Assembly (NCBI GenBank): GCA_047495785.1
Contig: JBLDXI010000025.1
Span: 2,108,001 to 2,172,000 of the forward strand
Reading direction: 5' to 3'
DNA length: 64,000 bases
Origin: Lepidodermella squamata
Taxonomy: Eukaryota; Animalia; Gastrotricha
In this document: in pieces, positions 6,885 through 62,108 of the stretch
Layout: each line of letters begins with the position of its first letter
Numbering within the stretch: the stretch's first letter is position 1
The notes under the pieces: generated by a model
The model's database searches: none
What the model was told of the DNA's origin: nothing
What the model saw: the letters and a program-made list of their open reading frames with translations, nothing else
Program-made: the position numbers and the translations under genes

Positions 6885-8719
6885 ATGGAAAGTACCGAGC
6901 AGAAAGCCAATCAGAAGCAGAGATATACTGTCTTCTGCAACGTAATGACTTCATTCGACTTTTCGAAACCAGGTATAGGCATTTCATTCGTAGGTATGTG
7001 GCAAAGTTGTTCCGCCTAGACCGCTGTACCATCCGAAGCGCTGTAACGCTTGCCAGGTAAACATCTTCTCAACTTTTATATATGATTAACCAGGATTTAT
7101 CCAGAAATTTTTCTCTCGACAAGCCAAACGACGATACGAATTTCAATGTATTACTGGAACATTTGACTGCAAAATACAGTGTGGAGAAACGCGAGGTTGT
7201 TGCAACCGTTGCCGGCTCGAAAGATGCTTTGCATCCCAACGGCAAACTCGTATTACCTACATTTGTATGCATTTCAACCAAAAATTAATTGAGTATAGCT
7301 GCAGGTAAGGCTTCCGAACACAATGATGCGATACTGAACGCTAGCTCTTATGACTCGCGCTTTTATGATAGCAAGGAAGGTCAGGGAAGGTTCAGCGAGA
7401 AAAATGCGAGAAATAACCAGGGCTTGATCATATCCATCCCCACCAATCCTTACGATTATTATCTGACGCTAGTAGAAGACGCCACCAGAAATTCTATTAT
7501 CGGGATCACGTTTCTGCATGACTTGAACTCGGTAATTCTTCATTTAATATTTACGTATATAGTATGCACTTTTCTGTCTCCTGTAGTTACCGCTACGAAG
7601 AAGGAACACTCCCTATGATAACCTCAGCACTTTGGCAACGGAATTTTCCAGGGATCAAATCAGAATGTATAATGATGCAGGCATACGATTCGCGCGTTAC
7701 ATGAAAGGTGCATATTACTTTGACGTTAATAATTAATCAAATTTTCAGATAAAGCGCCGCTTAATGCGCTGAAATTTAGCCATATTCTTTCATCGGTGCT
7801 ACCAGAAGACTACATATCGTTAGGGGCGTTGGATAAATCGAATTTAGGCTTATTTACTTCCATTTCAAGGTAATTAGTGACAAGTCTTTAGTTTTTTTAT
7901 TCTTCATTCACGTGAGAAATTTGCTTTTCACTTGTGAGCCGTCACCTTGAATCAGATGTAAACAAGCCTGAATTCGTCGCTAACAATATCGACGACATTT
8001 ATAATGTAAAAACCGCCATTTTGCAGAAGCCTTCGCCATTTCCGACATCGAGTGGCCTGAAACAGCCACCACCGGATGGTCTGAAACAACAATTGCTTTC
8101 GTGGCTCAACAAGCAGGCGATGAACATCTCATGAGCATAAATAAAGCTATCCTCCCGCAATTTCTGGACGCATTTCCTGAATTTGAGGTACTTTTTCGCC
8201 CAAATGTAGAGAAGTTAAAATTTTTCCAAATGTAATAACTAACGGAAATCCTGTAATTAGGAATTAACACTCATGATCCCCCATAAACTGGAGTTATCAA
8301 TTATAAACTCTTTACTTACCTTAATTTGCTGTCATCTGTATTTCTGCAGCCTCTTATCATGCGAGCGAAGGAGCTATCGCACGTGATGAGCGGCTGGCAA
8401 CCGACAATGCCCGAATTCGCGTTATTCCTTTGCTATCTGTTCTTCAGTGGTATGTGCCGTCGAAATTCTTAGTGATTCTTTGCAGTAATTCTGTATTCCT
8501 CATTCAGGATCTACGTCTCCGGCACTAGTTCAACTATCAATTATCTTACGAAATTCGCTGCTTTTGCAGCACGCTGCTTTGAGAAGAGAATGTCTGGACG
8601 AGAACCACGTCGCAAGGGCTATTGCTGTCATAAAGCAAGCCGTGGCTATTAGGCCGGAATTCGATTTGAAAGCCGGGGTCTGGGCGCGGAATATTAATCC
8701 ATCATTTTTATCTAACTAG
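6885..8719 (+). CDS. Divergent nuclear receptor-like gene G1 (8 exons; class B DBD, CNACQ P-box)
   Basis: Spliced frame MESTEQ...VFCN|VCGKVVPPRPLYHPKRCNACQ|KFFSRQAKRRYEFQCITGTFDCKIQCGETRGCCNRCRLERC. LBD exons include WQPTMPEFALFLCYLFF. GT-AG introns, stop TAG at 8717. Confidence 0.85.
7814..7990. mobile_element. MITE in G1 intron 5, same family as 16300-16482
   Basis: Imperfect TIRs atatcgttag...tttaggctt / aagcctgaatt...ctaacaatat. Confidence 0.55.
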
Positions 8720-9286
8720 ATGCGTACTTAATAATCTGCATTTCGTTCAATGCATTCGTTTCACAATAGATATCAGCCTCTCCCACCTGAAATCAGAATT
8801 AGGACACATACTTGTTTACATCGTCATTGCACTTTCTAGCCACCCCAACCAGCGAACGGTGATTAGCAGCTAATTATAGCATGCATTTTAATACCTGAAG
8901 TTGCAAGCAATTTGGCAATGAATAGCCATTTGATATGAAATAAATAAATAATAAATAAATTGATGACTAATGAAATTATAAATTGATGGCACCAGAGTTT
9001 GATATCAGAACTGTCATGTAACCCGACAGTAAAACGTAAATATGTCTCTCAACCGATGTCATGTACTCGAAGCAGGTGACGGAATGTCCAAAAATTCGCA
9101 TGGAAAAAACATATTATTCATTGTCATCAGCTTTGGCGAAAAAAGAGGAGCCGAAACGATTAAAATTTGTTAAATGTGTGCCACCATGAAGATTTTGCAC
9201 GCAGCACAGCTCAGGTTACGGTTATGTGGGGCTTCCACGAGAGCTTTCCGTCAGGCTCGATAGGTCTTCGAACTTGTAATTTTCAG

Positions 9287-9632
9287 AAATTCTAGACTCG
9301 GCAAGCTTCACGGCGCTTTGAATTCCAGTGTCTTAGTGGCAGAAATAATTGCGAAATCCTTCCGGGAAAAACTCGCGGTTGGTGCACTCGGTGCCGTCTT
9401 GAAAAGTGCTTCTCTTTGCGCTTAAACGCAGGTACAATATTTGTTGACGATTGAAGCTTGGTAGACTTCACTTTCTACAACAGTACTGAAAAGAAGAATA
9501 TAAGCATCGAATCAAAGGTCGAAACCACCAATAGTTTGTCATCAACAACTATTCCAGACAGCCTAGCTTTTCGAACTCAGAATAGTTGAGGGAGCCACGA
9601 AGGCATCAATTGTTGGAATCACCTTCTAGCAC
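9287..9632 (+). pseudogene. Nuclear receptor-like pseudogene fragment (exons 3-4 only)
   Basis: KF*TRQASRRFEFQCLSGRNNCEILPGKTRGWCTRCRLEKC, with TAG stops at 9293 and 9627 where paralogs have sense codons. Other exons absent. Confidence 0.85.
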
Positions 9633-9704
9633 AAAGTCATTTTTCGCTATTCGACATTAAGAATTACCCCCAAGGGTCTCAACTTTCCAATAAGAATTTA
9701 AATT

Positions 9705-10170
9705 ATGAAGTCGCCGATAGTTAGGTGTCGAGAATCACTCAGCAATCGGCTGCGGCTTGTCATCCGGCTTTTGTCCGGCAAGCATCGCGGAAGGCGCTCT
9801 TTCATATTCGGCATAAATTAAGGTATGACACAGACGATAACCTACAGCAATTGATGAAATAATAACACAGCTCTTGCATGAACTTCATATGGGCCATTTT
9901 TCCGCAATAATGTTTACGGTCCGGTTTTGGGCAGCCCTCACTGCTTCATCGCGTTTTTTGAAATATAATATTCTCGCTTGAAAGGCTCTGCGCTCTGAGT
10001 GTGCATTTACGATCAATATTTCTCATGGTTCATTAATTTTCTGCGAGTATCTATATGTTAGCTGCGAAATAACAAGAGAACAGACTCAAACTCCTGAAAA
10101 GGATGACAGTTTGCAGAGTCAATGACTACAATTTGTTAATTCGAATGTTCAACATGAAATCTATCGTAAA
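9705..10170. repeat. ~460-bp segment duplicated at about 15778-16240, containing the conserved module
   Basis: Near-collinear high similarity (cagcaatcgg...cttgtcatccggc...ttcaacatgaaatctatcgtaaa). Confidence 0.85.
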
Positions 10171-11884: not shown

Positions 11885-13923
11885 ATGGAAGTGGACGCGA
11901 GACGTGTGGCATGCAAGGCATTAAACCTTCAAAAAAAGTATAACCTATGTTATCAACCTGTATGTTGTTTCAGATATGCGGGAAATCTGTTGTGAAGCGC
12001 AAAAACTATTATCCAGGGCAATGCTCGGCGTGTCAGGTAACGAGGAAACAAGATGGAGATGGCGCTTTTAACCAATTCATTTCAGAAATTTTTCACACGG
12101 CAGTCTTCGAGGCGCTATGAATTTCAGTGTGTTACTGGCAGCAATAATTGCAAAATCCCTCCAGGAAAAACACGCGGTTGTTGCACTCGCTGCCGTCTTG
12201 AAAAGTGCTTCGCTTTGCGCTTCCGCTCAGGTATACTATCTACTGACTATTGCGTTTGGTACATAATATATCAGTCTGATTAGGATTGAAAAAGACCGAC
12301 GATAACCATTCTGGTTACGAATCAGAGACAAAAGTTGTTGGGATCACTGCGGATAGCTGTACATCAACGATACCAGACAGTCCAGATCTTGTCCATCTCG
12401 GAATAGTTGAGAAAGCAACAAAAAACTCAATTATTGGGCTCACCTTTATGCATGGCTTACATGCAGTAAGCTAAATGAGTATGCTTATATATTACAATTT
12501 ATTCTCTTTTCGTCTCTAATTCAGTTTCCGCTGCGAAGAAGGAATGTTCCTTATGATGATATCACAGCTTTGAAATCGGAATTTTCTAGCGATCAGCTCC
12601 GAGTCTTTAACGATTCAGGCATTATATTTGCACAGTACATGAAAGGTAGTTGCTAAATTTTGTTAGTTTCGCATCAAGAGGGGCAGGGCAGGGGGAGAAT
12701 AAAGGAGCAAACTGCAATACGAATATCAGCTCATCTGGGGTATGTTACTCGCCCGCGATTGCTTGCCAAGAGGCGAGCATCGATTGAAAACTGATGACAT
12801 ACACAACGATACTGCGTCAAATGATCGAGGCGTTTTCGTATTTCGTGGAAAATTATTTCGCCAGCTGATAGTAGCGCCAGCAGATGACAATCGGTGCTTA
12901 TAGTCATTTTCCAAAGTTCAGAATGATGATCCGCTGCGATTGAAGAAAACATTATCTCTTGCAGAAGCCTTTGAAATTTCTGACCGCGAGTGGCCACAAA
13001 ACGCCGCAAATGGTTGGGCTGAAACTTCAATCGCTTTCGAGTCGCAAAAAAGCGATAACAATGCGCTTTCCATCAACAAAGCCATCTATCCCCAATTTCT
13101 AGCTGCTTTCCCTGAGTTAGAGGTAAATCTATTCATCGCCCCTTTCGTTCCGCAGGGAAACATAAAAGAATGCCATTCAAAATAATAAAGATTCGTGACC
13201 AGATTGGAACACCAGAAAAAATATCACCCTAATAACTAATTTATCTGCCGAAAGCATGAAGTCAGTTTCGGTATCTGAATTCACGCTTTCAGTAAATATA
13301 TGTAACTGCATTTTTGTTCATGAATTAGGGTGATTTTGGACATGAATTCAGATAAATGTTGAAAACTCGTGAATTAGGAAGCTCACAGGTCCCTAATTGA
13401 GGGGATTTCACAAGCTTAAAGTCCGATTTTTTCATCACCCAAATTAGGGTAATTTTTCTCTGGTGAAATGATCTATTGACTTCATACGTCCTAAAACAAT
13501 TATTCTGTAAATTCGATAAAACGAGTATTTTTCTGTCTCCTTTGCAGCCTTTGGTTATGTGGTCGCAGGAGCTATCGCACGTGCTAAATGGCTGGCAACC
13601 GACAATGCCCGAATTCGCTCTATTCCTGTGCTACCTGTTTTTTAGGGGTAAGCGCCAAATTAATCATCACTCCTCACTATCCTCACTAATCATCACTATA
13701 CACAGCATCTAAGACTCACGCATTGGTTAGACTATCAAACGTACTGCAGAAATCGCTGTTCATGCATTGCGCTGCCGGCCAGACAGGAAGTCAGTGGCAG
13801 GCCTACGTCGAAAGGGCAATTACTATTATGGACCAAGCCGCAGCGTATAGAAGATTAATTCATAAGAGTGCTGAGGGTCGCTCAAGTTCTTGGTTGCGAA
13901 ACATTAAGCTGCCAATTTACTAA
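11885..13923 (+). CDS. Divergent nuclear receptor-like gene G2 (class A DBD, CSACQ; GC-AG first intron)
   Basis: MEVDARRVACK|ICGKSVVKRKNYYPGQCSACQ|KFFTRQSSRRYEFQCVTGSNNCKIPPGKTRGCCTRCRLEKC. All LBD exons present. AATAAA at 13959. Confidence 0.85.
13210..13465. mobile_element. MITE with CAC termini and 2-bp target duplication (CACTA/EnSpm-like) in G2 intron 6
   Basis: aa|caccagaaaaaatatcaccctaat ... attagggtaatttttctctggtg|aa. The homologous empty site ctggaaatgat is seen in G6. Confidence 0.75.
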
Positions 13924-14504: not shown

Positions 14505-14640
14505 TAAAGCTTGGACTACAACTTGGAGGTTGCCATTGGCAAGACCATGATGTCAAAAGAGCTATTAATTGCTATTAAGGAAGAGGCCGCAGTGTACAGG
14601 CCAACTTATCTGAAAAATGCAGAGGATCGATTTTTTTGGT
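14505..14640 (+). pseudogene. Remnant of the last exon of a nuclear receptor-like gene
   Basis: GGCHWQDH..KRAI, then frameshifted AIKEEAAVYRPTYLKNAEDR, homologous to exon 8 of the paralogs. Confidence 0.7.
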
Positions 14641-14705: not shown

Positions 14706-14778
14706 GCCGAGGTGGCTTAGTTGGGAGAGCGGTAGACTGAAGATTTAAAGGTCCCTGGTTCGATCCCGGGTCTCAGCG
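14706..14778 (+). tRNA. tRNA-Phe: tRNA-Phe(GAA), probably degenerate
   Basis: Collinear with eukaryotic tRNA-Phe (GCCGAGGTGGCTTAGTTGGGAGAGCG...CTGAAGA...GGTTCGATCCCGGG). Mismatches in the acceptor and anticodon stems. Confidence 0.7.
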
Positions 14779-14830
14779 TGCCGTTGGCCTAATCTAATTG
14801 TCATGCTAGAAGCCCACTGGGGTTTTCTAT

Positions 14831-14887: not shown

Positions 14888-14951
14888 ACTCTTTTTTTCT
14901 TGAAAATGTATTGAAAAAGTATCACATGATCTAGGCATTTAATTTTATATC

Positions 14952-18532: not shown

Positions 18533-20260
18533 ATGGAAGCAAACGAGAGGCGCTCTGCTTGTAAGGTATGCTATTTTAAAACATCTGAATCGCCATCTTC
18601 TACGCTCTCCTTCACAGGTATGCGGCAAGTCTGTTCGGAAACGAAGAACCTATTTTCCCGGTCAGTGCTCAGCGTGTCAGGTACAGAAGATGTCAAGTAA
18701 AAATTAATCTTCCAGCTTTTCTTGTCCAGAAATTCTTCGCTCGACAAGCTTCAAGGCGCTATGAATTTCATTGTTTTACTGGCGGGAATAATTGCGAAAT
18801 CCTTCCAGGAAAAACACGCGGTTGCTGCACTCGCTGCCGTCTTGAAAAGTGCTTCGCTTTGCGCAGAAACTCAGGTTAAACATCTATGGGAGATATAAGT
18901 TTGTTAAATTCTATCTATTATTTTAGCACTGAAGAAAAGTAGGAATACGAATGCTCGTAACGAATCAGATACAACAGATATTGAGACCACTGATGATTGG
19001 ACATCGGCGATCCCGAGCAGTCCAGATCTCGTCGAACTCACAATGGTGGAGGAAGCCACAAAAACCTCAATTCTTGGGCTCACGTTTCTGCACAACTTTC
19101 ACGCGGTACGCTATATGCGATTCCTTATACTAACTAAATAGTCCTTTTCCGCCCCAAATTTAGTACCCGCTGGCAATGCGGAACGTTCCGTTTGATGACG
19201 TTGCAAAGTTAGCATTCGAATTTTCTACAGAGCATACTAGAATCTATAACGAAGTGGGCATAATATTTTCGAGGTTCTTGAAAGGTAAACCATTTTTTAT
19301 TTTGTTTTTGGGTTTAATATTCCATTTTACAGAGGCGTTCCACCTATCTGAGCGGGATTTGGCCCAAGCTGGCGCGACAGGGTGGCAATTAACCGCGCTA
19401 GCTTTCTCATCCCAATCCAGCAACGAGAAGCCATTGTCAATCAATGCTGCCCTCCTACCACAATTTCTCGCCATTTTCCCCGAGTTTGAGGTAATGCTCC
19501 AGTAATTTCACATACGTTTGACAGATAACGGAATAATTACGCTTAACAATTATTGCTTGAAAGTATTGCTTTTAGCTTTTTTTTTACTCAGGCATAAATA
19601 ACTGCTTTGAGAATATCACAATTTTGACAGTGTACAGGGTACCGTACCTCGAGAGGTCCAATAAGTCACCTCCCCCTTCCCCACTTCGAATATTTTACTT
19701 TATCCACTGGTGTTGATTTGTCCAAAATTGTTCACATGTTTCACCTCGCATTCCTCTGAAAAACGCGTGTTCTGCTAGCTTTTTCCACTATGTCATTTGG
19801 CGTCTTTAAAAAGTATCGCGAAAATCAGCCATTATTCGAGCCCCGGCGTCCTAGAATGCGTCATTTAAATGTACCTATTTCTGCTTTGTAGCCAGTCGTG
19901 TTGTGGGCACAGGAGCTTTCGCACGTTCTAAGCGGCTGGGAACCGACAATGCCTGAATTCGCTCTATTCCTCTGCTATCTGTTTTTTAGTGGTATGAGTA
20001 TTACTCCTCACACGAAGTTTTACTGATTTTCTTACGCAGCATCTAAAAATCTGTCATTGGTTCGGCTATCGAATGTACTGCAGAAATCGCTGGTCATGCA
20101 GTATGCTGCTTTGAGAAGAGGATGTGAGTCGCGCGACACGGGCTACATCGCAAGGGCCATTGCAATCATGAAGAAGTCTGCAGCTTACAGGCAACGATTC
20201 TATAAGAACGCAGAGGATCGCTCGGATTTCTGGATGCGAACCGCCGAGATATCATTCTAA
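18533..20260 (+). CDS. Divergent nuclear receptor-like gene G3 (class A DBD)
   Basis: MEANERRSACK|VCGKSVRKRRTYFPGQCSACQ|KFFARQASRRYEFHCFTGGNNCEILPGKTRGCCTRCRLEKC. Eight exons in frame with GT-AG introns. Confidence 0.88.
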
Positions 20261-21948: not shown

Positions 21949-23854
21949 ATGATCATAGCGAAAATCGATGGGAAGGGTGTTGCCTGCAAAGTATCTTTAA
22001 AATATGCATAGCCCATTTATGAATTGTTCAATCGTTCCAGATATGCGGCAAGCCTGTTGTGAAACGAAAAAACTACTACCCAGGGCAATGCTCAGCGTGT
22101 CAGGTAAAGGAAGATGAAACTTCAAAATGGAGCTTTTAGCTTGTGAAAATTCATAGAAATTTTTCACTCGACAAGCATCGAGGCGTTTTGAATTCCAGTG
22201 TGTCACTGGCAGGAATCATTGCGAGATCCTCCCTGGAAAAACTCGCGGTTGTTGCACTCGTTGCCGTCTTGAGAAGTGCTTCGCATATCGCGTGAACTCA
22301 GGTAAATATCTCGAGGCGATTAACATTTTTTAAATTCTGTCTGATACATTAGGACCAAAAAAGAGCAGCGATATCAATGATAGCAAAGGATCAGAGACGA
22401 AATTCCTTGAGATCTCTGGGGATAGTTTGACTTCAACGATACCAAGCAGTCCAGATCTAGTTCATCTCGGAATAATGGAGAAAGCAATTAAAAACTCAAT
22501 TATTGGCATCACCTTCATGCATGACTTGAATGCGGTAAGCTAATTGCGTTTCGTTATTTTACAATTTGTTCTAATTTTGTCTCTTATTTAGTTTCCGCTG
22601 CGAAGAAGGAATGTTCCATATGATGACATCTCAATTTTGAAATCGGAATTTTCCACCGATCAGATCAGAATCTTTAACGATTCAGGCATGGAATTTTCGC
22701 AGTACATGAAAGGTACTTACTTAAATTTCTCTAGCGTCGCACTAACGGGAACGGGGACGGAGAGCAAGAAAGTGATTAATTTGAGTCAAGCACCATTGTT
22801 GCGTGTGTGAATTTGATAAGATATTCCCTAACCTTTTCGCTTTGAGTGATTCGCTTATGCCGTGAGGAAAGTTGTTATTAAACAACCGAAACGTCGGCTT
22901 GTTCTTTCTTGTTAACAAGTGTCGCGGTAGTCCGAAAGGTTTAGGGGTTAGGGAATGTCTTAACAAGAGAGTGAGGTGCAAATCGAATATCACTTCATCA
23001 GCACTCGGGAATGTTACACGGTCGATTGAGTGGCAAGAATCGAGCATCGATAGAAAGCTATGAATAAATGTCTAAAGATGGTACTGCGTCGAATTATCGG
23101 GGCACTTTCTCATGGAAAAAATATTGACAAAGAATGCCACCCGAATGACCCCCGATGTAATGAAGTGGTATGACCCCCGGTGTTCGGTGTTTTTCGCAGT
23201 TTAGGATGAGAATTTGCTGATAAACTTTAACTCTTGCAGAAGCCTTCGAAATTTCTGACCGCGAGTGGCCACAAACCGCCGCGAATGGCTGGGCTGAAAC
23301 CACAATCGCGTTTGATGCGCAACAAGGGGACAAGAATCCGATTTCCATCAACAAAGCCATCCTGCCTCAATTTCTGGCCGCTTTGCCCGAGTTTGAGGTA
23401 AATCTCTTAACCTCCTCTTTCTTTGTGCAGGGCTAAAAATTAAAAACTGTGCAATGAATTGGCTTGTCTCGTTTGCAGCCTTTCGTTATGTGGTCGCAGG
23501 AGCTTTCGCACGTTCTGAATGGCTGGCAACCAACACTGCCCGAATTCGCTTTATTCTTGTGTTGCCTGTTTTTCAAAGGTGAGCACCAAATTGATGATTA
23601 TTCCTCACACGTATCGCCTTTTTCTTTTATTCACAGCATCTAAGACTCGGGCATTGGTTCGAATTTCAAATGTCCTGCAGAAATCGCTGTTCACACAGTG
23701 CTCTACTTGCCGAAGAGGAAGTCAGTGGCAGGACTACGTCCAAAGAGCTATTGCTATCATGGAGCAAGTCGCAGCGCATAGGTGTATATTACATAAGAGA
23801 CCACAAGATTGCTCAAGTTCTTGGCTGCAAAACATCAAGCTGCCACTTCACTAA
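21949..23854 (+). CDS. Divergent nuclear receptor-like gene G4 (class A DBD)
   Basis: MIIAKIDGKGVACK|ICGKPVVKRKNYYPGQCSACQ|KFFTRQASRRFEFQC... All exons present. Confidence 0.8.
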
Positions 23855-26540: not shown

Positions 26541-26934
26541 TCTCAGACACTGATGTTTTTATCGTGACTTCGAAGTTCGAAAACTTGCAGAGTTGTTTGG
26601 ATTCATCCTGATGTTAAAACATGATCCAAAGTCATCAAACCTAAGACATTCATTCATGTCTGATGGCCGAATGTCTATTGGGATCGTTCAAAATAAGAAT
26701 TTCATTTTATTCTGAATCTATTTTCTTTGCTAACATGTAAATATTGAATCACGAAAGAGTAAAATGGCCACAAGGACAGGTTGATTATAGACTCGTCGGG
26801 GTCCAAAAACAACCGCTTGATGCATGTAAAAAATTAAAAGCGTGAAACGGTGCAGTTATATCAAATCCAGTTCCAAACTAAGATATTCTTCTATTTTTCC
26901 CACGTTCAACCTATCCAGTCCGGTTAAGCCATGC

Positions 26935-41140: not shown

Positions 41141-42764
41141 ATGGACGAACGCGATGAAGAAGTTGCTCAAGAGCGAGCTACAATCTACTGCAGGGTAAAA
41201 GCTTCGCATGTTTTTTTTGCCTGCTCATAATCCAATCATTTTGCTCACAGGTATGTGGCAAGGTTGTCCCACCGAGAAAGCGATATCATCCTAGGCAATG
41301 TAATGCCTGCCAGGTAGGAACATTCCTTGTCAATTTGGCTCTAAGCAATTGTCTGGTAATTATTTAGAAATTTTTCTCTCGACAAGCCGATCGAAGATAC
41401 GAATTCCAATGTATCGGTGGCAAATTTGACTGCAAGATAAAGCAGGGAAGAACTCGTGGTTGTTGTACCCGATGTCGGCTTGAAAAATGCTTTGAAACAC
41501 GTATCCAAATTCGTTTGTCATCTTATTCGCTGATCTACTTGAGAAAATGACTACAACATTTTGCAGATATGAAGAAGCAAGTTGCCAAAGAAGATCCTGC
41601 AAATTCAAAAATTGAGCCGAGTGGCCCTTTTGGAGTTGACAAGAATAATTTGTCCCAAATCGACCACATTGATGACTCAAGTTTAGTCTTAGTCGAAAAG
41701 GTGACAAAAAAATCAATTTTGGGACTCACGATTCTGCATGATTTATATTCGGTAAGAGAAAGAATTGACTTTGCGATATTTTTCGAAAATTTTCCATTTC
41801 CATAGTTCCCTCTCCGAAAACGCGATAAACCGTATGTCGACATCAATATGTTGGCCGCTGACTTTTGCATTCATCACATCAGCATTTTCTACAATTTGAG
41901 CTTCAAATTCGCGGAGCACATCAGAGGTTGGCTTTTATTATTCATGGATTTTGTTCGTGATTAGTTCATATTCCCTAGATGCATTTTCATTGTCTGACTC
42001 TGATTTCGACGCAACTTTGACTACAGGCTGGGCACCAACAGCTTTCACATTTGCAGCTCTGCCGAGTAACCAATGTGCCATGTCCGTCAACGATGCTATT
42101 CTTCCTCAATTTTTAACCATTTTTCCGGAGTATAAGGTTAGTATCGATAGTAGATATTGAGCAGGCCAAGGCGTAGCGCGGTAGTTTAAGGTCACCTTGA
42201 GCAAATCAAGTATAAGGCGATATGGCGTAATATCCTCCAACGTTAACGTGAATTCGTAGAAAATGACGATAAATCATGCACAGCCATTAGCAATTAGCCA
42301 TGTGAAGAGTTGTTGGTTGTTGTATTCATCTGCTTCTACTAAAATGTTTCCACAGCCAGTGGTCGAGCTATCCAAGGAGCTTTCGCACGTGATAACATGC
42401 TGGAATCCATCGATGCCCGAATTTGCCTTACTACTCATTTTTTTGTTCCTCAGTGGTGAGACTTTTCTTGTTCAGAATGTTCTCGAACTCGTCTCCACTT
42501 TATCCAGGAAAGAGCGTTCGAGCGACAAACCCCCGCCTGACTCAACTTTCAAGACTCGCGAAAAAGTCTCTCGCTGTTTTGAAATCATCAACCTCAAATG
42601 GCGATGAAAGCCATAGTGACAACTATCCCAATCGAATACCAACAATATTGGAAAACCTTGCTGAAATAACACCAGGTATCATTGAAACCACGGCAGCTCG
42701 CCGAGATTTCGCTTTTACAGAGCAGCAATTCAGCATGGCTATGGAGAGGCTTTCAATGTCTTAA
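41141..42764 (+). CDS. Divergent nuclear receptor-like gene G10 (class B DBD; most divergent LBD and last exon)
   Basis: MDERDE...IYCR|VCGKVVPPRKRYHPRQCNACQ|KFFSRQADRRYEFQC...; WNPSMPEFALLLIFLF; last exon ends MERLSMS*. Confidence 0.83.
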
Positions 42765-43768: not shown

Positions 43769-45486
43769 ATGGATACCAACGATGAACAGTGTGTCAAGAA
43801 ACAAAAGTCAGTAGTCTACTGCAACGTAATTATTTTCGTGACTTTTTTGACTCCACAACCTAATTTATTTCATATAGATTTGTGGAAAAGTTGTCCCGCC
43901 GAGAGAGCGTTATCATCCTAGGCAATGTAATGCTTGCCAGGTAATTTTTTATTCTCAACGTTTTCGGTAATAATTTCTAGCATTCATTTAGAAATTTTTC
44001 GCCCGACAACGCGAACGAAGATTTGAATTTCAATGTATCACTGGGAAATTCAACTGTGAGATAAATCCGGGAGAAACTCGTGGTTGCTGTACCCGTTGCC
44101 GGCTTGAAAAATGCTTTGCATTGAGACTCCAAAGATGTATGTCATTTGTTTTCCTATTTTTAGACAGATATATATATAAGTAGAATCCTCTAGATTTAAG
44201 GAAGAAAAGCGATGACTCTCCGGGCGATACTGAAAAGGATCCAAATGAAGATTCTAGGTCGAAAGAAGATAACTCGGCTTCAAATGAAAATTCATGTGGC
44301 ATCTGGCTTAGTGCCATTGGCGAAGAATCAGCCTCCCGCTTTGTAACTGCTAATAGCAGGAATTCAATGATACCAAACAACCCTGTTCTAATCCACTTCA
44401 GACAGGTGGAGGAAGTCACCAAAAGCTGCATTATCGCGCTCACGTTTCTGCATGACTTGCATTCGGTAACTTTATCTAGGTTTTCTCAGTCCAATCACTC
44501 ATTCCATGTCGAATTTAGCTCCCGCTGAGAAGACGGAACGTTCCTTATGATGACATCTCCCAGCTAGCATCAGAATTTTACACCGGTCAGATCAGGATCT
44601 ACAACGAAGCAAGCACCAAATTCGCTAAGTACTTAAAGGGTACACATTTTTTCAATTAATCTGATTTTGCTCATCGATTCATTTCAAGTTTAATGTTACT
44701 CTATTGCAGATGCTTTTGGAGTTTCTAATCACGAATTGACTCAAGCTGTGGCGACCGGGTGGCCCTCAACTGTGTTAGGTTTCACTGCCCAACCTGGCAG
44801 CGATAACCCAACACCAGTCAACGAAGCTCTCTTACCAGCATTTCTGACCGCTTTTCCCGAGTTTGAGGTAAACACTGTTAACCGCTATTTTCAACGGTAC
44901 ATGATACGAAACATACAGTTGAACATGTATGATGCTATGCTATACAGGCGTCTCACCTTCATGTTCAAAATAAGAATCCCAATATTCCATATCTCATGAA
45001 GCAAATGAGTTGAGCCCTAGCCCCTAGCGTGATTAACATTGTTCGGAAGCTTTTCATCGGTCGAAGGCGGAGTCTAACATTGTAAATCTATTTATTATTT
45101 TTACAGCCTGCCGTTATGTCGGCTAGGCAGCTATCCCGCGTGCTGAGTGCCTGGCAACCAACAATGCCGGAATGCGCTTTATTCCTCTGTTACCTATTCT
45201 TCAGCGGTATTTATCAAATCTGTGTTTTCCGTTTTGGGTACATCAAATGATTCTTTGATACGCAGGATCCTCGATTCCGAAATTGGTTCGACTGTCAAAT
45301 TTCTTGTTGAAATCGCTGTTCATGCATTACGTTGCTCTGAGAAGAGGGAATCAGCGGCAGGATGGAATTCACATCGAAAGAGCCATGGCTATCATGCAAC
45401 AAACCACAGCAGATAGACCGACATTTTTGAAAAAAGCGGAGGCTCACTTAACTTCCTGGGTGCGAGAAGTCAAGCCGTCCTTGTAG
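43769..45486 (+). CDS. Divergent nuclear receptor-like gene G11 (class B DBD, long hinge)
   Basis: MDTNDE...VYCN|ICGKVVPPRERYHPRQCNACQ|KFFARQRERRFEFQC... Eight exons in frame. Confidence 0.86.
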
Positions 45487-46138
45487 TCTGAAGCGTTGTT
45501 AACCTTTTCGTGTTTTAGTGACATCTCAATGAATAAACATCGGTTCGTCGAGTCGTCTAGCGAAGAAATCGATTCAACTTTTCCTGATAATGGGTTGTGT
45601 ACTGAATTTTCCTTATCCTATCTCTTATCACATTTCAATGTCCCCACGGTCTTCGAATTCTTCAAATTTCGGTCATCGCCACTGATCACACCATATCAAG
45701 TTTAGTTACAGCGCAATTCGAAATGACTCCAGCAATAGCTTTCAATTTATTGGTGATGAAGCGCTGAATTTTAGGTATAAAACGATGAAAATAGTAATTG
45801 CTGGTGTTTACCACCTATGAAAGTATGGGATGTCATCACTGATCACCCACTCACGCCGCTCTGTGTCTGATGTGCGAGTTCGATCAATAATTCTGCTCTA
45901 TTAAAGCCTCAGACTAGTATTGCAGCTTCTGAAATTTAATATGCTACGAGTTAGGCATTGAATTGGAAAGCAGCATCAATGAGCGTTTTGCCTTGCATTG
46001 CAAGAGTTGGAACAACATTTTGAGGCGATTATCGCTGTTTTTTTCGTGACGAACTATCACACTATAAAACCTACAAAAACGTTATTGGTATTTCCTGAAA
46101 GCCATAGAATAGGTTACTATCCCGTCTTTCTTATGCAG

Positions 46139-46345
46139 CAAATTCGGTTCCGGCGTTGGTTCGAATATCAGATGTCTTGCAGAATCATGCATTACGCTGC
46201 TTTAAGAAAAGGATGTCAGTCGAAGGACGAGAATCATGTTGAAAGAACTATTGCTATCAAGCAGCAGGCTGCAGCGTATAGGCCCGGCGTTGTTCAAAAA
46301 AGCAGAGGCGCGCCCGATTTCCTGGGTTAAAAACATCAGTTCATG
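46139..46345 (+). pseudogene. Last-exon remnant of a G15-like gene
   Basis: ALVRISDVLQ...MHYAALRKGCQSKDENHVERTIA with frameshifts. Downstream 46350-46620 resembles 62110-62400. Confidence 0.8.
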
Positions 46346-46839: not shown

Positions 46840-47104
46840 ATCTCCTATCGCGACGTCGAAACATGTTGACATCACCGAGCTAGTACATCTAATAACAGCG
46901 AATTAATGACTTCAAAGAGTATGTACACTCTCGCAGCGAACGCGATCGGCATTTGGAACTATCGACTTTCTTTAGCATACGAAAATCAGCTCGAAATAGC
47001 AACTGCTGTTATGAAGCAAGACGCAATACAAAGACCGACCTTTATGAAAATGCCGATGCTCATCCAACTTCCTACAAGTACAAAACGTCAAGCCATCATT
47101 ATAG
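46840..47104 (+). pseudogene. Heavily deleted nuclear receptor-like remnant (pieces of exons 5 and 8)
   Basis: gcgacgtcgaaac..gacatcaccgagctag, then YENQLEIATAVMKQDAIQRPTF and aacgtcaagccatcattatag. Confidence 0.6.
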
Positions 47105-48488
47105 TCTCTCATGGGTGTTTAGTAAACTGTCAACAATTGCAAAAACTTGCGAACGAGTTTTTCTGTTATGATGGTGTTTTTGTACTACATTTCGAGGTCA
47201 TTTGCGATGTGACCCGCCGCCAGATAGCCTTTCAGGACAAATGAGCTAGCTGGGCAGTGTGCGCTCTCTAGCATCCAGCAGCGTCCTCGTTAAAATGGTT
47301 TCGCTAACTATACTTAATTAATTGATATCGAGCGAGAGCTCTCACATTTTTTATTACTTAGTTCCGCCTGAACTCCGCAATTCTAGTTTTGCGAAATATG
47401 GAAAAATCATTAAAATAGTCAAATCTAGCCCCTGCCAGCGCTAATCAGGCCAATACCTAAGCATAATCTATCTTCTCCCTAGCTCTATTTGTACCGTATT
47501 TGTTCCAATAGCAGCCCGGGGTACTAAATTTTCAACCCTCAAAATTGTCCTAAAAAGTGGATTACTAATAGAGATGGGCGATTTGTTAGACGCTCGCTTC
47601 GGTTTTTTTTGGTCAAAGCCACCCAACAGACCCCTTGAGAACAAAATTCGGCCCAATTTTTCTATCGCAGCCGAATTCGCGTGAAGTGTCACTCAAGTTG
47701 TGCTTACAAAGCTATTTTACAAAGAAAAAACAATTTATAATAGAAAAAGAACGACAATGAAAAATTAGCTGTACAAATGACGATGGACAATGGCCTTATT
47801 GTCCCTAACTTGTCCCTAAATTAGAGATTTAGGTAGGCCTAGTTTTTTTCCTAGTATATCACCTAGTAGGCCTAGTATATCACCTCCATTTATGAGCAAA
47901 CTGAGGCATTTTTTGCTGTTAGTTGATGACCTAGTCCGAGCGACAATCGAAGGATCTTGTATCGTGTGGTAGTGCGAGCTAATTGCGCCTTCCATTTTGG
48001 CAATATTCTTGTTCAATATTTCGTGAAGTCAATACTTATAGATAGCTTTTTGCCCGAAAAAGATGCCGGCATCAAATAAATGTCCCTCTTTATATATATC
48101 ACCTCCATTTATGGGCAAATTGATCTTAACGTTCATTTGATAGTTCTTAGTTTTGAGTTCTATGCAAGTTCAAATTGGACAAGTCGAACACGGACGACAA
48201 TATCGTCAAGCGTAACTAGGTCGTATAAAAAGTAGACACCGGACACCTTCCCCGCTCCTTCCTGCTGACGCTGTACGGATGAATGAATAATATCTTTGTT
48301 GTCATGTTCAGTAGCACTCCGAATAAAGCACTACTTACAACTTACATAATCTGACGGGGTTGTTGTCACTCAATGAAACACGGATGAGTACTTAAAAAAC
48401 CGATAAATCAATTCAGTTTATGTAGGTTGTCCTTCTACGTTTGATAGCTTCACTTATCACTTCAGCTGAAACAATTCAAAACATCATC

Positions 48489-50394
48489 ATGGACTACAAC
48501 AGCAACCGTCTCGTGCAGAAACAGAGAGTCACAGTCTACTGCAATGTTACAACTTTATTTGGCCTTTTGACTTTTTAATCCATTTCTTTCATAGGTCTGC
48601 GGCAAAGTTGTTCCGCCGAGGACGCGATACAACCCGCGGCAGTGTAGCGCTTGCCAGGTTAACTACGTCACAATTCTGTCACACTATTTTCCCCACTATA
48701 AATATTTAGAAATTTTTCACTCGACAATCCGATCGAAGGTACGAATTTCAATGCGTCACTGGGAGATTTGACTGCGAAATTAAACCGGAACAATATCGTA
48801 ACTGTTGCAGTCGTTGCCGGCTGGAAAAATGCTTTGCAGTGCGTGAACGAAGACGTATGAAATATTTTAATTTGATTACTCTATGGAATGAGCAAATTAC
48901 ATTGCCCAGATATTACGAGGCAGCTTGCTGGGCCTTCTACTACTGATACTAGGTTGGATGGTTCGAGCCGCTATAATGCTAGTGAAGAGTCGGCAACTTC
49001 AAGCATTATTCGCGATAGCTGGAATTCAACGATACCAAGCAATCCCGATCTATTTCAATTCAGTGCGGCGGAGAGAGCCACCAAAAGGTCAATTATTGGG
49101 CTCACGGTCCTGCATGACTTCCATTCGGTAATTTATCGCTCAATTCTGGGCTCATATTAGTTTCGTCCAGTCTCCAGGCGACGGTTGCGCAATTGGAGGG
49201 TAAAAGAGGACTTATGCGCGAACCCTAGTCGAAAATTTTATAAATTTCAAGGCCTCGTGCGGTAATGCCAGCTGTCTATTGGTTTTGATTATTTAGATTA
49301 TTTAGGCGGCTTTTATTCCAAAAGTTAATTCAGCGATTCTCTATCGCATCAGAGATCGCATAAATATAGGGTTCTCGCGATAAATATTAATAGGAACATG
49401 TTTTACGCGCATCTTAACTTTCGAGAAGCGATTACGAGCAAAATTTAAGATGCGGGTGAAACTTATTTTGTTCGCGCTCAAAACTAATATGGGCCCGGAA
49501 TTTATCTGTACTTCCCTTGTTCTTGTCTAACCACTCGTCAAAATTGTTACGGACCAAATTCAGTTCCCGCTGCTAAGAAAGAACGTTCCTTACAATGACG
49601 TTACCAAGTTAGCATCAGAATTTTCCAACCTACACGTCGAGATGTTCAACAAAGCAAGCTCAAGATTCGCACAATACATGAAAGGTATATAAGGATAATC
49701 TTTTGAGCTGATCAGGCGAATGCCTACTTTTTTCTTGCAGAAGCTTTCGCCCTTTCTAACAGCGAGTTGGCAGAAATAGCTGCGGTAGGATGGACTTTAG
49801 TCGCACATGCTTTCCCATGTCAACCTGGCGATGAAAATCCAATCTCCATCAGCAAAGCTATCATGCCACAATTTTTGTCTATTTTCCCCGAGTTCGAGGT
49901 AAATCATCTGCTCTTCTTATTTCCATTCTGCCTAGTTTATCATTGCTTATCGGATTTTGAATGTGGCATTTCAGCATGATTTTAACATTTACGGTATCTG
50001 CCCTTTTGCAGCCGCTCATTCTTTGGGCAAAGGAGCTTTCACACGTCTTTAGCGAATGGCAACCAACAATGCCGGAATTTGCTCTATTCATTTGTTTCCT
50101 GTTTTTCAGTGGTAAGTGCTGAGCCGTATTAAAGTAATTTATTGTATATCATCCTGATGTCTTTCCTACTTAGGATCAAAGACTCCAGCAATGCTTCGAC
50201 GAGCGGATGTTTTGCAGAAATCCCTCTTAATGCATTACGTTTCTCTAAGAGGAGGCTGTCAGTGGCAGGACGAGATGAATCACGTCGAAAAGGCAATGAC
50301 TATCATGAAGCGAGTTGCAGCGTATAGGCCGATATTTGTGAAAAAAGCGGAGGATCGCTCGAGGCTCTGGTTGCGCAACATCGATTTCTCATGA
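48489..50394 (+). CDS. Divergent nuclear receptor-like gene G12 (class B-like DBD, CSACQ)
   Basis: MDYNSN...VYCN|VCGKVVPPRTRYNPRQCSACQ|KFFTRQSDRRYEFQCVTGRFDCEIKPEQYRNCCSRCRLEKC. Eight exons. Confidence 0.86.
49144..49500. mobile_element. MITE in G12 intron 4
   Basis: TIRs ttctgggctcatattagttt / aaactaatatgggcccggaa. Confidence 0.65.
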
Positions 50395-57112: not shown

Positions 57113-58929
57113 ATGAATATCAGCGATGAGCAATTTCCCAAGGAAGATAATTTAGTCATCAACTGCAATGTAATGATTTTTCATGACCTTTTTGACTTCA
57201 TGACCTGATTTATTACGTAGATATGCGGCAAAGTTGTCCCGCCGAGAGAGCTATATCATCCTAGGCAATGTAATGCCTGCCAGGTAAACTTATTCTTTCA
57301 ACGTTTCCGTTAATAATTGCAAGCATTCACTTAGAAATTTTTCGCTCGACAACGCAAACGAAGGTTCGAATTTCAATGTATCACTGGGAAATTCAAGTGC
57401 GAGATAAATCCTGGAGCAACTCGTAGTTGCTGTACCCGTTGCCGGCTTGAAAAATGTTTCGCGTTGAGACTAAGAAGATGTAAGGCTTTTTTTGATGAAT
57501 TTAACAGAAAATAATCAGTAGAATTCTCTAGTTTCAAGAAGGAAAAGCGATGATCCTTCGGAAGTTACCATAAAGGAACCAAATGACGATTTTAGGTCTG
57601 AACAAGACATCTCGGTCTCGGCTCTAAATGCTTATTCATATGGCACCTGGCTTTATGCTACTAGTGTAGGATCTGGGGCTCCCGGTTTTGAAGCTAACAT
57701 CAGAAATGCAACGATACCTAGCAATCCTGATTTAATCCACTTCAGTAAAGTCGAGAAAGCCACCAAAAGCTCCATTACTGCGCTCACTTTTCTGCATGAT
57801 CTGCATTCGGTAATACATCTTCCTATTTCAATTCTCTCAGTCAATTGCCCTTCCTATTAAGCTCCCGCTGCGGAGACGAAACTTTCCTTATGACGATATC
57901 ACCCAGCTAGCCACAGACTTTTACACCAGCCAGATTAGGATCTGGAACGAAGCAAGCACCAAATTTGCAAAATACATGAAAGGTATGAATTTTTCAAAAA
58001 ATCTGATTTTCCTTTATCAAGTTAAATTTTATTCTCTTGCGCAGATGCTTTCGGAATTTCGAATCATGAGGTGATTCAAGCTGTCGCGACGGGCTGGTCT
58101 TCAACTGTGCTAGGTTTCACGGCACAAACTGGCAGCGAAAATCCAACACCAATCAATGAAGCTCTCTTGCCGACATTTCTTGGCGTTTTTCCCGAGTTTG
58201 AGGTAAACGCAGTCAATTTGTTTCCTAGTTAGATGCTACACCAGAAAAATATCACCCTAATTTATCTACCGAAAGCATGAATTTAGTTTCGGTATCTGAA
58301 TTCATGCTTTCAGTAGATAAATAACTGTCTTTTTGTGTATGAATTAGGGTGATGTTGAAAATCCATGAATTAGGATACTCACAGGGCCCTAATTGAGGGG
58401 ATTTCACGAGCTAAAATTCCGATTGTTAATCACCCATATTAGGGTGAATTTATTCTGGTGTATGGCATAAATGTCTCATTATTATTTCCGTTTCACGGGT
58501 CGAGAAGCAAAGTCTAGTATTATAAATCCACTTCCCTATTTGCAGCCTTTCGTTAAAATGGCAAAGGAGCTATCACACGTGCTGAGTGCCTGGCAGCCAA
58601 CGATGCCCGAATGCGCTTTATTCCTCTGTTACCTATTTTTCAGCGGTATGGATCAAATCCCCGGCTTTCTTTTTTGACCCATCCACTATCAATTCATTTG
58701 ATACGCAGAATCCTCAATTCCGAGATTGGTTCGACTATCAAATTTCTTGCTTAAATCGCTGTTCATGCATTACTTTGCTGTGAGAAGATGGCATCAGCAG
58801 CAGGACACAATTCACGTGGAAAGAGCCTTGGCTATCATGCAACAAGCCACGGCTTATGGACCGACATTTCTGAAAAAGGCAGAGGCTCACCAATTTCCCT
58901 GGGTGCGGATCGTCAAGCCATCCTTATAG
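57113..58929 (+). CDS. Divergent nuclear receptor-like gene G14 (class B DBD; sister of G11)
   Basis: MNISDE...INCN|ICGKVVPPRELYHPRQCNACQ|KFFARQRKRRFEFQC... Shares MPECALF and the long hinge with G11. Confidence 0.86.
58239..58460. mobile_element. MITE in G14 intron 6, same family as 13210-13465
   Basis: ta|caccagaaaaatatcaccctaat ... attagggtgaatttattctggtg|ta. Confidence 0.78.
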
Positions 58930-59954: not shown

Positions 59955-60120
59955 GAGAGACTTTAAAGCTGAATACCGACGTTCTGACTAACCAAATTAC
60001 CATGACTGCCGTTTTTCAGCAGTATTAATTAAGTCCCTACTCCTGAGAGACTTAACAGCTTATCATTGTCGTTCTGACTTATCTGAATTACCGTGTCTGC
60101 CGTTTTTGGCGCCATTAATT
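59955..60120. repeat. Diverged tandem repeat, 2 x ~89 bp
   Basis: gagagact...cgttctgact...aattacc...tgccgttttt...attaatt occurs twice. Confidence 0.6.
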
Positions 60121-60189
60121 CTAACCTTGATCACCTATAACAGACAGTTATTTGGAGAGGGAGCTGTTCTGCTTTGCCCTTATGCGTGG

Positions 60190-60315
60190 TAGGACACAAG
60201 GGCGCAGACATAGGCGCGCAGACGCAAGCGCGCCGGCTTTAGGGCGAAAGACAAACGGGCGTCAGACAGATGAGCTCAAAGTCATCAGGGCGCTGAGTCG
60301 AGACAAAAGGGCGGA
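60190..60315. repeat. Short degenerate repeats (gaca..ggcg), probably a transposon subterminal region
   Basis: gacacaagggcgca, gacataggcgcgca, gacgcaagcgcgcc, gacaaacgggcgtca, gacaaaagggcg. Confidence 0.5.
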
Positions 60316-60823
60316 GAATTAACAGTTAGAATGCAGCATTGCATCAAATAAGAGACGGAGTTACCGAGTCATCGTGTAAAAACGACGCGTATCACAGATT
60401 CTGTAATTCTAACATCGGTATTCTGTTTTTAGGTCCTCTGCTATTTATTGAGCCTATTGATAAGTTTAGTGAATGAATTTGAAAATTTATCGTAAATAAC
60501 ACGCTGGCACGTGCGAAAATTTTGACGGGGCGTCCTTCTCTACCCTGAGCCTGAGAACATTTTACAGTGGTGTCGAGTTGATTATTTTCGAGATGATAGT
60601 CGCGCAACAGAGGAAATTACTTGATTGAGTAATTAGAAAGGAAGAGTTTCCTTCAAATCTTTAGCAGCGCCCAATGGCAGGCTTTTTGGAATTCGTCGAA
60701 GTCAGATGTGAACTATTTGCTTCTATATTCTGCCAGCAATTTGCTTCAAAAATCACCCTCAATAATCGCTGATTTTTCATGAATATTATGAATAATTTTA
60801 TAAAAAAGTTGAATCGATCGATT

Positions 60824-62108
60824 ATGCAAACTGACTTGAAACCAGTTTTTTGTCAGGTAATTTTTTCGAAATTTAAAATTCGAACTTTGCATACCTTTAA
60901 ATTAAACAGATATGCAGCAAACCTGTGACCAGGCGGCAGTACTATTGCCCGAAGCAATGCTCGGCGTGTCAGGTTATAACGATTTTACGCATTTAACAAT
61001 TTCGTGCTTCAAACTTGTAATTTGTAGAAATTCTTCACTCGCCAATCTTCGAGGCGTTTTGAATTCCAGTGTGTCACTGGTAAGAATGACTGCAAAATTC
61101 CTCCAAAAACTCGCAACGCTTGCACCCGATGCCGTCTTGAAAAGTGCTTTGCTCTCAAGTCAGCAACAAAATATAGAAATGCTGACGATAACTTGAAATC
61201 ATCGATACCAAGAGAGCCTGAACTGGCCGATCTCACGATGGCGGAGAGTGCAACCTTTAAATCTATTGTTGGCCTCACGTTTTTGCACGACTTACATTCG
61301 GTAATTCTTTCAACTCCCCAGCCAATTCGCAGTTGCATCTGTCCTCTCAAATTAAGTTGCCGCTGCGAACAAGGGCTGAACCTTATGAAGACGCAAACAA
61401 GTTGGCGTTAGACTTTGCCACCGATCAGTTAAGGGTCTATGGCATAGCAACTGAAAGATTCGCTCAGTACATGAAAGGTAAACATGCTCAAATTTCCGTA
61501 GTATGATTTTTCGAACACGTTCATCTTACAGAAGCTTTTGCCATTTCAAATCGCGAGCTGGCGCAAGCGGTCGCAACAGGGTGCTGGTCAACTGTGCTGG
61601 CTTTCACATCCCAACCCGGCGACGAAAGCCCACTGTCAATCAATAAAGCTATTATTCCTCAATGGCTGGCTATTTTTCCTGAATTCGGGGTAAAGCTATT
61701 GAAATATTGAATAGTGTTTAATGCCGCTTACGCAGCCTATCTTTTCGTGGGCCAATGAGCTATCGCACGTGTTGAGCGACTGGAAAGCTACAATGCCGGA
61801 ATTAGCTTTATTCCTCTGTTACCTGTTTTTTAGTGGTAAGTTCCTTATTGATGGCCACTCATTCTGTGTCTTTATCCTGTCATTCTTACGCAGAATGTAC
61901 GACCCCGGCTATGGTTCGAATATCAGATGTCTTGAAGAAATCGCTGATAATGCATCATGCCGGTTTTAGAAAAGGATCTTCAAATCAGGACGAGAACCAT
62001 GTCGAAAGAGCCATATCTGTCATGCAGCAAGCAGCAGCGTACAGGCCGGTATTGTTCAAAAAAGCAGAGGAGCACCCAATTTCCTGGGTTCACAACTTCG
62101 ATTCGTAA
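60824..62108 (+). CDS. Divergent nuclear receptor-like gene G15 (class C DBD; 7 exons, exons 3 and 4 fused)
   Basis: MQTDLKPVFCQ|ICSKPVTRRQYYCPKQCSACQ|KFFTRQSSRRFEFQCVTGKNDCKIPPKTRNACTRCRLEKCFALKSATKYRNADDNLKSSIPREPELADL...FLHDLHS read continuously. Confidence 0.85.

Follow-up and report, generated by a model that had tools for sequence, protein, structure and literature searches.

A tandem array of 14 nuclear receptor genes

The window, meaning the whole 64,000-nucleotide stretch of Lepidodermella squamata DNA analysed here, contains 14 full-length, co-oriented genes on the + strand, recovered with a spliced-alignment script from the ATG at 6885 to the stop at 62108. This confirmed the proposal of an earlier note of at least 14 intact-looking, co-oriented paralogs with a common exon structure. 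Each gene has an ATG, an open frame and a single terminal stop; all introns are GT-AG except for two of the GC-AG type. The genes scored 740-1088 versus 32-49 for shuffled DNA. The proteins span 320-380 aa and are encoded by eight exons in 13 genes and by seven in g14. Exons 2, 5 and 7 measure 63, 121 and 100 nt in all 14 genes, exon 6 measures 158 nt in 13 (161 nt in g1) and exon 3 measures 145 nt in 12, with ATG-to-ATG spacings of 2.6-6.6 kb. Because the copies share only 37-74% protein identity, the array is not an assembly duplication.

6885..8719, +: g1, intact, 8 exons, 363 aa; group B DNA-binding domain (DBD), 3′ exons nearer group A
9296..9626, +: remnant, exon 3 (one Cys changed to Trp) and frameshifted exon 4
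11885..13923, +: g2, intact, 339 aa; GC donor in intron 1
14510..14638, +: remnant, exon 8 piece
18533..20260, +: g3, intact, 339 aa; exons 18533-18565, 18618-18680, 18730-18874, 18927-19105, 19164-19284, 19333-19490, 19892-19991, 20040-20260
21949..23854, +: g4, intact, 342 aa
24841..26540, +: g5, intact, 338 aa; P-box AACEK
26919..27287, +: conserved non-coding module, best copy (one of 13 copies or pieces)
27904..29755, +: g6, intact, 336 aa
31659..33273, +: g7, intact, 339 aa; GC donor in intron 4
37802..39399, +: g8, intact, 339 aa
39867..40380, +: DBD-only copy, exons 1-3 intact, end of exon 4 as a trace, LBD exons gone
41141..42764, +: g9, intact, 356 aa; most divergent LBD of the array
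43769..45486, +: g10, intact, 378 aa; sister of g13
46113..46340, +: remnant, frameshifted exon 8, nearest g14
47033..47108, +: remnant, short exon 8 piece, nearest g13
48489..50394, +: g11, intact, 360 aa
53148..55038, +: g12, intact, 339 aa
56115..56474, +: remnant, broken exons 7-8 of a g9-like gene, with frameshifts and a stop
57113..58929, +: g13, intact, 380 aa
60824..62108, +: g14, intact, 320 aa, 7 exons; lacks intron 3, short hinge

The degraded copies, anticipated as a DBD-only copy and five or more remnants, comprise one LBD-less copy, nearest to g1 (75% at the nucleotide level), and five remnants. The non-coding module occurs as 13 copies or pieces, all on the + strand and spanning 4514-63927; it is part of the duplicated unit, lies upstream of several genes and has no match in Rfam. 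The array shows block duplication with reciprocal loss, and the tandem family would have been built, in a lineage-specific manner, via unequal crossing-over. Birth-and-death evolution, as the sequence had first suggested, is borne out by the remnants, whereas "active", in the sense of recent duplication, is too strong because the closest intact pair stands at dS 0.40 (range among copies, 0.4 to >1.5). The history of exon 6, which encodes helices 4-6, conflicts with that of the remaining gene. It is possible that g1 is a chimera, given its group B DBD and 3′ exons nearer group A; silent sites gave no support for g1 having recently received its exon 6. A tandem duplicate of 790 bp, perfect in sequence, is located just upstream.

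Expression and purifying selection

Run X2, a probable RNA run whose type was guessed and which was used as assembled contigs, covers exons only, leaves most intergenic bins without depth and holds GT-AG splice junctions missing from the DNA run X1. The junctions came from at least three genes, and three to five genes in all had RNA support: intron 2 (45 nt) of g5 was skipped, intron 3 of g6 was skipped and its exon 5/6 junction was present, the exon 3/4 junction of g3 was a loose end, and the bins across the last three exons of g4 were covered. dN/dS was 0.14-0.18 in the DBD, 0.28-0.40 in the LBD and 0.69 in the hinge, showing purifying selection on the array genes. The checks on expression and per-domain dN/dS that had been called for therefore came out positive, with splicing of at least three copies and ratios well below 1. 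Site models (own implementation, fixed tree) detected no positively selected sites in the LBD (M8 = M7).

These data bear on two alternatives. An assembly artefact of amplified DNA, or a set of silent pseudogenes, is vanishingly improbable: the source assembly was likely made with whole-genome amplification (PMC11660948) and the 790-bp duplicate would suit an artefact, but for the array as a whole this reading is refuted by identities of 37-74%, open frames, a dN/dS much lower than 1, spliced RNA and the coverage of 30/30 bins of the tested stretch by DNA run X1. Very improbable, too, is that largely redundant copies were kept for dosage or divided expression, with LBD divergence reflecting relaxed constraint and no new function. 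The absence of positive selection, the ratios in the hinge (0.69) and LBD (0.3-0.4) and the dispensability shown by six dead or truncated copies are in its favour; however, purifying selection has kept 14 copies intact across dS values of 0.4 to >1.5, and g9 has retained a distinct C-terminus.

A non-canonical DNA-binding domain

All eight zinc cysteines are present in 15/15 DBDs (the 14 genes and the DBD-only copy). Exon 3 of g14 matched Pfam zf-C4 (E 2.3e-6), and all 24 PDB sequence matches of exon 3 were receptor DBD-containing chains; with the LBD fold of a relative described below, these matches uphold the nuclear-receptor identity first read from the letters. The finger spacings common to all copies are x14/x6/x9-10, versus the canonical x13/x5/x9. 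Every copy carries the P-box (S/N/A)AC(Q/E)K, in which three of the four canonical DNA-contacting residues (contacts from PMC3908500) are replaced: E153, K156 and K160 (RXR numbering) are changed and R161 is kept. Since the recognition helix hardly varies between copies yet lacks these three residues, we infer that all copies would bind one common non-canonical DNA element. The nuclear-receptor DBD is among the most conserved domains in animals, and the change of three of four contacts and all three spacings, then fixed over 14 copies and a second species, constitutes a natural experiment in new specificity.

A metagenomic relative links the C-terminal exons to the LBD fold

A search of 1.84 billion representatives with the exon-3 profile turned up no close homologue; P0028 was the one match confirmed as a relative. 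This relative (P0028/P0041, on metagenome contigs) has x14 and x6 spacings as in the window, the P-box EACQK and the same phase-0 intron before the LBD; its DBD groups with the window DBDs (support 100/99), and window exon 3 matched it at a hhalign E of 3.7e-13. Its second, C-terminal exon was modelled at pLDDT 66 and compared by structure search, in which the first 36 matches were receptor LBDs (Z 14.0-8.0; next unrelated chain, 7.2) and the best aligned 193 residues at Z 14.0 and an rmsd of 3.7. The same exon matched window exon 7 (E 3e-5) and the window LBD profile at 22-23 bits, against 7 bits for the best of 2000 shuffles. The significant match spans only about 85 residues (helices 6-9), and the registers of helices 3-5 and 10-12 are those of a multiple alignment judged by eye. 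The LBD fold is thus shown on a model of the relative's exon and, by homology, is predicted for the window genes.

Searched one by one against Pfam and PDB, the window LBD exons gave no receptor match, and a partial read-through model (g3 exon 5-intron-exon 6) was poor (pLDDT 50). In the ESM Atlas, the relative's exon leaned to Hormone_recep clusters (0.89), a lead only; the window read-through returned nothing, and the atlas structure search gave nothing relevant. Aligned by eye, the region of the LBD signature (Ti, between helices 3 and 5) places Y-M-K, F, E and G-W on the RXR row of PMC10497141 S5 if three residues are deleted. A Trp occupies the class-I W40 position in 12/14 LBDs, unlike NR1 LBDs. 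Entropy is highest in the putative pocket helices (1.3-1.4 bits), as opposed to 0.4 in helix 8 and the recognition helix.

Subfamily of origin

In the DBD tree (68 columns, long branch), the family groups with mite and bdelloid HR96-like DBDs at 100/99, although these references were chosen by similarity to the query and are therefore biased. Class profiles scored 46 bits for HR96-like, 40 for NR2E and 32 for the first DBD of two-DBD (2DBD) receptors, the others ranging down to about 20; the nematode NR2A-type profile, built from four references only, was lowest of five classes at 21 bits. AU tests rejected neither grouping with the first 2DBD domain (p 0.385) nor with NR2E (p 0.21). The P-boxes of HR96/NR1J (ESCKA) and NR2E ((D/N)GCS(G/C)) are absent from the window genes, each of which has one DBD, without the 2DBD-NRA pair EACKK-EGCKG; the G-box RxGRQ(P/S) after the DBD is likewise absent from their alignment. 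On tree and profile an HR96-like origin tentatively comes out best, and the 2DBD and NR2E alternatives stand, in agreement with the earlier difficulty in assigning the family to a described subfamily.

A single-DBD offshoot of 2DBD receptors that, having lost the second DBD but not the first, now competes or partners with them is distinctly unlikely. A single substitution separates the relative's EACQK from EACKK, the first-DBD signature of 2DBD-NRA (PMC10497141), the lysine before FF is rare elsewhere, x14 and x6 also occur in some rotifer first DBDs, and the grouping survives the AU test. Nevertheless, published first DBDs are mostly x13 and x5, and the reading is weakened because x14 is limited to rotifer NRA4 in that alignment; the first-DBD profile scored below HR96-like and NR2E, no RxGRQ G-box follows the DBD, and the window DBDs end in C-x2-C-R-L-x-K-C-F rather than in a sequence of the CQYCRFQKC type.

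The proposal of a distinct receptor family could have failed on a confident grouping within a described expanded subfamily, a C-terminal region lacking the LBD fold, or silent genes with dN/dS near 1; we found no firm grouping, an LBD fold via the relative, and expressed genes with dN/dS well below 1.

Most copies appear to end before helix 12

The C-terminus extends 33-36 aa past the helix-10 Arg in 13/14 genes and 43 aa in g9, whereas in the model of the relative helix 10/11 stops 25 residues past this Arg and the last helix occupies +30 to +50. The hydrophobic-x-E motif is absent from the tails of 13/14 (register from the alignment). Depending on that register, 13 of the 14 proteins appear to end before helix 12; the extension of g9, the sole such copy, could be a helix 12, and the short tail surrounding the C-terminal Trp, a conserved residue, could serve as a non-canonical one. 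The apparent absence of helix 12 argues against ordinary ligand-switched activation, and an LBD without it has a precedent in Rev-erb (10.1101/2020.05.05.079277). Given that these 13 copies also keep the helix-3 lysine, Rev-erb-like action is most likely: they would act as DNA-bound repressors or modulators docking corepressors or dimer partners rather than as agonist-switched activators, with variation in helices 3-5 and 10-11 tuning the binding of partners or small lipids. Judged from the predicted anatomy, such a corepressor-type role would fit better than the "chemical sensor" role. The 13 copies and the one with a candidate helix form a built-in comparison of activation and repression.

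It is unlikely, though worth serious consideration, that the genes encode chemical or dietary sensors that are activated by ligands and descend from an HR96/NR1J-type xenosensor, with differing pockets and one DNA output. The HR96-like grouping (100/99) and profile (46 bits), the variability of the putative pocket helices, the discordant exon 6 and the control of detoxification genes by HR96-like tandem duplicates in the mite (PMC10435515) all point that way. Against it are the similarity-picked references and long branch, the survival of the 2DBD-DBD1 and NR2E groupings in AU tests, the missing ESCKA P-box, the class-I-like Trp (12/14) that is unlike NR1 LBDs, the lack of positively selected sites and the apparent absence of helix 12.

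Collectively, we modestly favour a lineage-specific tandem family of transcribed orphan nuclear receptors under purifying selection, with a common non-canonical element and mostly Rev-erb-like repressors or modulators. More tentatively, they may represent an old unclassified subfamily of at least two meiofaunal species, which acquired a new DNA element via a re-engineered recognition helix, whose expanded branch dropped helix 12, and which forms one arm of a nematode-like independent radiation in gastrotrichs.

Comparison with known receptor systems

The receptor family of the array looks undescribed, although receptor expansions broadly like it are well documented. The searchable literature held no paper on gastrotrich nuclear receptors or linking Lepidodermella or gastrotrichs with receptor expansions, and the word "receptor" does not occur in the genome paper. 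The claim that expansions are known mainly from nematodes does not hold, as spider mite HR96-like (8 canonical and 47 LBD-only genes; PMC10435515), amphioxus NR1H and oyster NR1P (PMC7827873) expansions are published. Lineage-specific expansion being already known, the array brings detail more than a new principle.

The nematode supplementary receptors (HNF4-derived, P-box CRACAA) resemble the array as a lineage-specific burst with a clade-specific conserved P-box (PMC3908500, PMC7827873) and as small genes with tiny introns, but they differ in P-box and finger spacings, and the array's host is a gastrotrich. HR96/NR1J-like receptors have the nearest DBDs in the tree and also form tandem duplicates; the bdelloid NR1J-like P0011 and P0016 have the C-x-T-G-x3-C D-box and CxRCRLEKCF end in common with the array. 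In contrast, the array has xACQK instead of ESCKA, an x14 first finger without the H/N-Y/F-G/N motif, a class-I-like Trp in helix 5 and no detectable LBD sequence match to them. The 2DBD-NRA first DBD (EACKK; PMC10497141) shares the AC-x-K-FF recognition helix and, in rotifer NRA4, x14 and x6, whereas the array has one DBD, no G-box and a lower profile score, and most 2DBD receptors have an AF-2.

NR2E receptors (TLX/PNR/HR83) have in common with the array the six-residue D-box, CRLxKCF, the helix-5 Trp and, in P0022, an EFA opening helix 8, although their P-box DGCSC/NGCSG is absent from the array and the best tree places the family elsewhere, with the AU test failing to reject the NR2E grouping (p 0.21). 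NR2E receptors behave as repressors. Rev-erb (NR1D) shows no sequence sign of orthology (NR1 P-box EGCKG) and comprises one or two genes rather than an array, but its LBD lacks helix 12 and keeps the helix-3 lysine, as 13 of the array's 14 proteins appear to, making it a functional analogue for corepressor-only action.

A tandem array of 14 intact receptor genes

A six-frame motif scan of the window located 16 plus-strand occurrences of the second-finger motif, and a purpose-written spliced aligner produced 14 complete gene models (g1 to g14) spanning 6885-62108. All models possess an ATG, an open frame, a single terminal stop and canonical splice sites, except for two GC donors; these GC-AG introns, g2 intron 1 (11918) and g7 intron 4 (32225), are GT-AG in the paralogues. 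Exons 2, 3, 5, 6 and 7 are almost constant in size (63, 145, 121, 158 and 100 nt), and introns measure 45-70 nt in most cases. In g14, exons 3 and 4 are fused (61028-61300) and the hinge is short; intron 3 was lost, probably through deletion. Acceptor-like sites immediately 5′ of the ATG in g8 (37775-37802), g9 (41125-41141) and g11 (48460-48489) represent putative 5′ UTR introns or trans-splice sites. Intergenic scans revealed one copy lacking the ligand-binding domain (LBD), at 39867, and five remnants; together with the spliced models, they bear out the earlier note's count of 14 intact genes, one copy that has a DNA-binding domain (DBD) alone and five or more remnants. The proteins (320-380 aa) share 37-74% pairwise identity, with medians of 71% in the DBD, 56% in the LBD and 32% in the hinge. 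Queries for database searches and for folding were single exons or contiguous stretches; models joined from coordinates were used in alignments, trees, dN/dS estimates and comparisons to fetched proteins. Other features of the window are as follows.

4514-63927, plus strand: conserved non-coding module of ~350 nt, 13 copies or pieces (best copy 26919-27287)
14706-15587, between g2 and g3: three tRNA genes (Phe-GAA, Glu-CTC, Lys-CTT on minus)
33400-35900: GC-rich insert
34134-34463, in the GC-rich insert: weak CCHC zinc-knuckle ORF (E 0.012)
34978-35904, minus strand, in the GC-rich insert: 308-aa ORF

Module copies precede a start codon by 340-2600 nt and have no match in Rfam; they are possibly promoters or enhancers duplicated along with the genes. 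The copy at 63810 may mean that the array extends past the window end. More tRNA-like fragments occur near the tRNA genes. The GC-rich insert is probably a retroelement remnant.

Expression and constraint of the genes

Expression and per-domain dN/dS had been proposed as checks in the earlier note. Over 23230-29225, run X2 (2015, guessed to be RNA) covers bins with exons and likely UTRs, leaves most intergenic bins at zero depth, and gives shallow coverage of the downstream end of the module copy preceding g5. In X2, g5 intron 2 and g6 intron 3 are absent, each removed at GT-AG, and g6 exons 5 and 6 are joined; loose ends match the g3 exon 3/4 junction and a g12-like junction. None of these joints is present in the DNA run. 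As this evidence consists of contigs, expression levels cannot be ranked from it. Median pairwise dN/dS was 0.14 for the DBD, 0.28 for the LBD and 0.69 for the hinge, and codon models gave 0.18 (DBD) and 0.40 (LBD) with no positively selected site class, indicating that both domains are constrained. Of the 14 coding differences listed between the runs and the window, nine are synonymous and no stop is among them.

Turnover of the array is old

Sister pairs are not adjacent (g10/g13, g7/g12, g2/g4, g5/g14), and the block g9-g10-remnant (46 kb) corresponds to remnant (56 kb)-g13-g14, reflecting segmental duplication with reciprocal loss. The "active birth-and-death" evolution described previously therefore holds as to turnover, but this is not recent, because the closest intact pair has a dS of 0.40. 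In the exon 6 tree, g1, g2, g4, g6, g7 and g12 cluster (support 92/93); exons 2, 3 and 5 reject this cluster (p 2e-4), and exons 7 and 8 do so weakly (p 0.04). At silent sites, g3 and g8 are near this group everywhere but in exon 6, and the 5′ half of g1 belongs to one group and its 3′ end lies closer to the other. This pattern suggests that paralogues exchanged sequence long ago, with the group defined after inspection of exon 6 and the counts small. Separately, 4689-5478 is repeated perfectly at 5490-6279 (790-bp tandem duplicate, 4689-6279), either a very recent duplication or an amplification or assembly artefact.

A divergent DNA-binding domain and its relatives

Exon 3 matches Pfam zf-C4, in agreement with the earlier reading of the fingers, and every match of its profile among PDB sequences is a nuclear receptor. 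All eight zinc cysteines are present in 15 of 15 DBDs, but the finger spacings are x14, x6 and x10 (x9 in g14) instead of the canonical x13, x5 and x9 (PMC10497141). The recognition helix, C-(S/N/A)-A-C-(Q/E)-K-F-F-(T/S/A)-R-Q, ranks among the family's least variable parts; of the half-site contacts E153, K156, K160 and R161 (RXR numbering; PMC3908500), it retains R161 and substitutes the other three. From these sequences we infer that the copies may bind one common, non-AGGTCA element.

A search of 1.84 billion representatives gave no close homologue of exon 3; the best single stretch reached 42 bits. A weak match, the metagenomic protein P0028, has the x14 and x6 fingers with the P-box EACQK. 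Its contigs (L001, L002; freshwater or unspecified origin, 35-38% GC) carry a two-exon gene in which the DBD is uninterrupted and the sole intron aligns with the window genes' intron 4; in the DBD tree, P0028 and the window DBDs cluster with support 100/99. Two more LBD exons of this type were found (53% and 47% identical). The relative's family is tandem too, because on contig L003 such an LBD exon precedes another EACQK DBD. The intron 5′ of that exon contains a CCCTAA telomere-type repeat run (L003 525-625), and a tRNA-Arg(TCT) gene lies immediately 3′ of the receptor gene on L001 (2027-2098).

The DBD tree, which left out multi-DBD nematode-like and redundant PPAR sequences, joined the family on a long branch to HR96-like DBDs of mites and bdelloids, with HR96-like references drawn from the query's own match list. 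AU tests did not reject grouping with the first DBD of 2DBD receptors (p 0.385) or with NR2E (p 0.21). The array DBDs lack the defining P-boxes of all three, and we place the family in no described subfamily. Spacings of x14 and x6 in the first DBD also occur in two-DBD receptor fragments of rotifer NRA4 type from metagenomes (P0005 and relatives). The array family is real, expressed, constrained and apparently undescribed; receptor expansion of this sort is already known.

The ligand-binding domain and comparison with known receptors

Searched singly against Pfam and PDB, window LBD exons gave no match, because they are too short and divergent. The relative's contiguous second exon yielded a model (pLDDT 66, pTM 0.65) for which 50 of 50 among the Foldseek matches listed, and the top 36 in VIA, were nuclear-receptor LBD-containing chains (best VIA Z 14.0, 193 residues, rmsd 3.7; next unrelated chain 7.2). 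Window exon 7 is matched by this exon with E 3e-5, and a local script matched the exon to the profile of the window LBDs over ~85 residues (22-23 bits, against 7 for the best shuffle). Since it folds as an LBD and matches the window, the C-terminal half of the array proteins is, judged by homology to a modelled exon, an LBD. Aligned by eye to the RXR row of PMC10497141 S5, the helix 3-5 signature appears to be present, three residues short; 13 of 14 copies have the helix-3 Lys and 12 of 14 a class-I-like G-W.

After the helix-10 Arg, 13 proteins have 33-36 residues and g9 has 43; the relative's model puts the end of helix 10/11 at +25 from this Arg, with the last helix at +30 to +50. Given these short tails, 13 copies appear to end before helix 12. 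An E-R-L-containing tail is retained in g9 and in its dead duplicate at 56.1 kb. That the receptors act as ligand sensors, the role suggested in the earlier note, seems to us rather unlikely. The best explanation, slightly more likely than not, is that the array would constitute a set of corepressor-type receptors sharing one new DNA element. Rev-erb, a known receptor without helix 12, is a repressor that binds corepressor (10.1101/2020.05.05.079277), and the array resembles it in the apparent loss of this helix from 13 of its 14 proteins.
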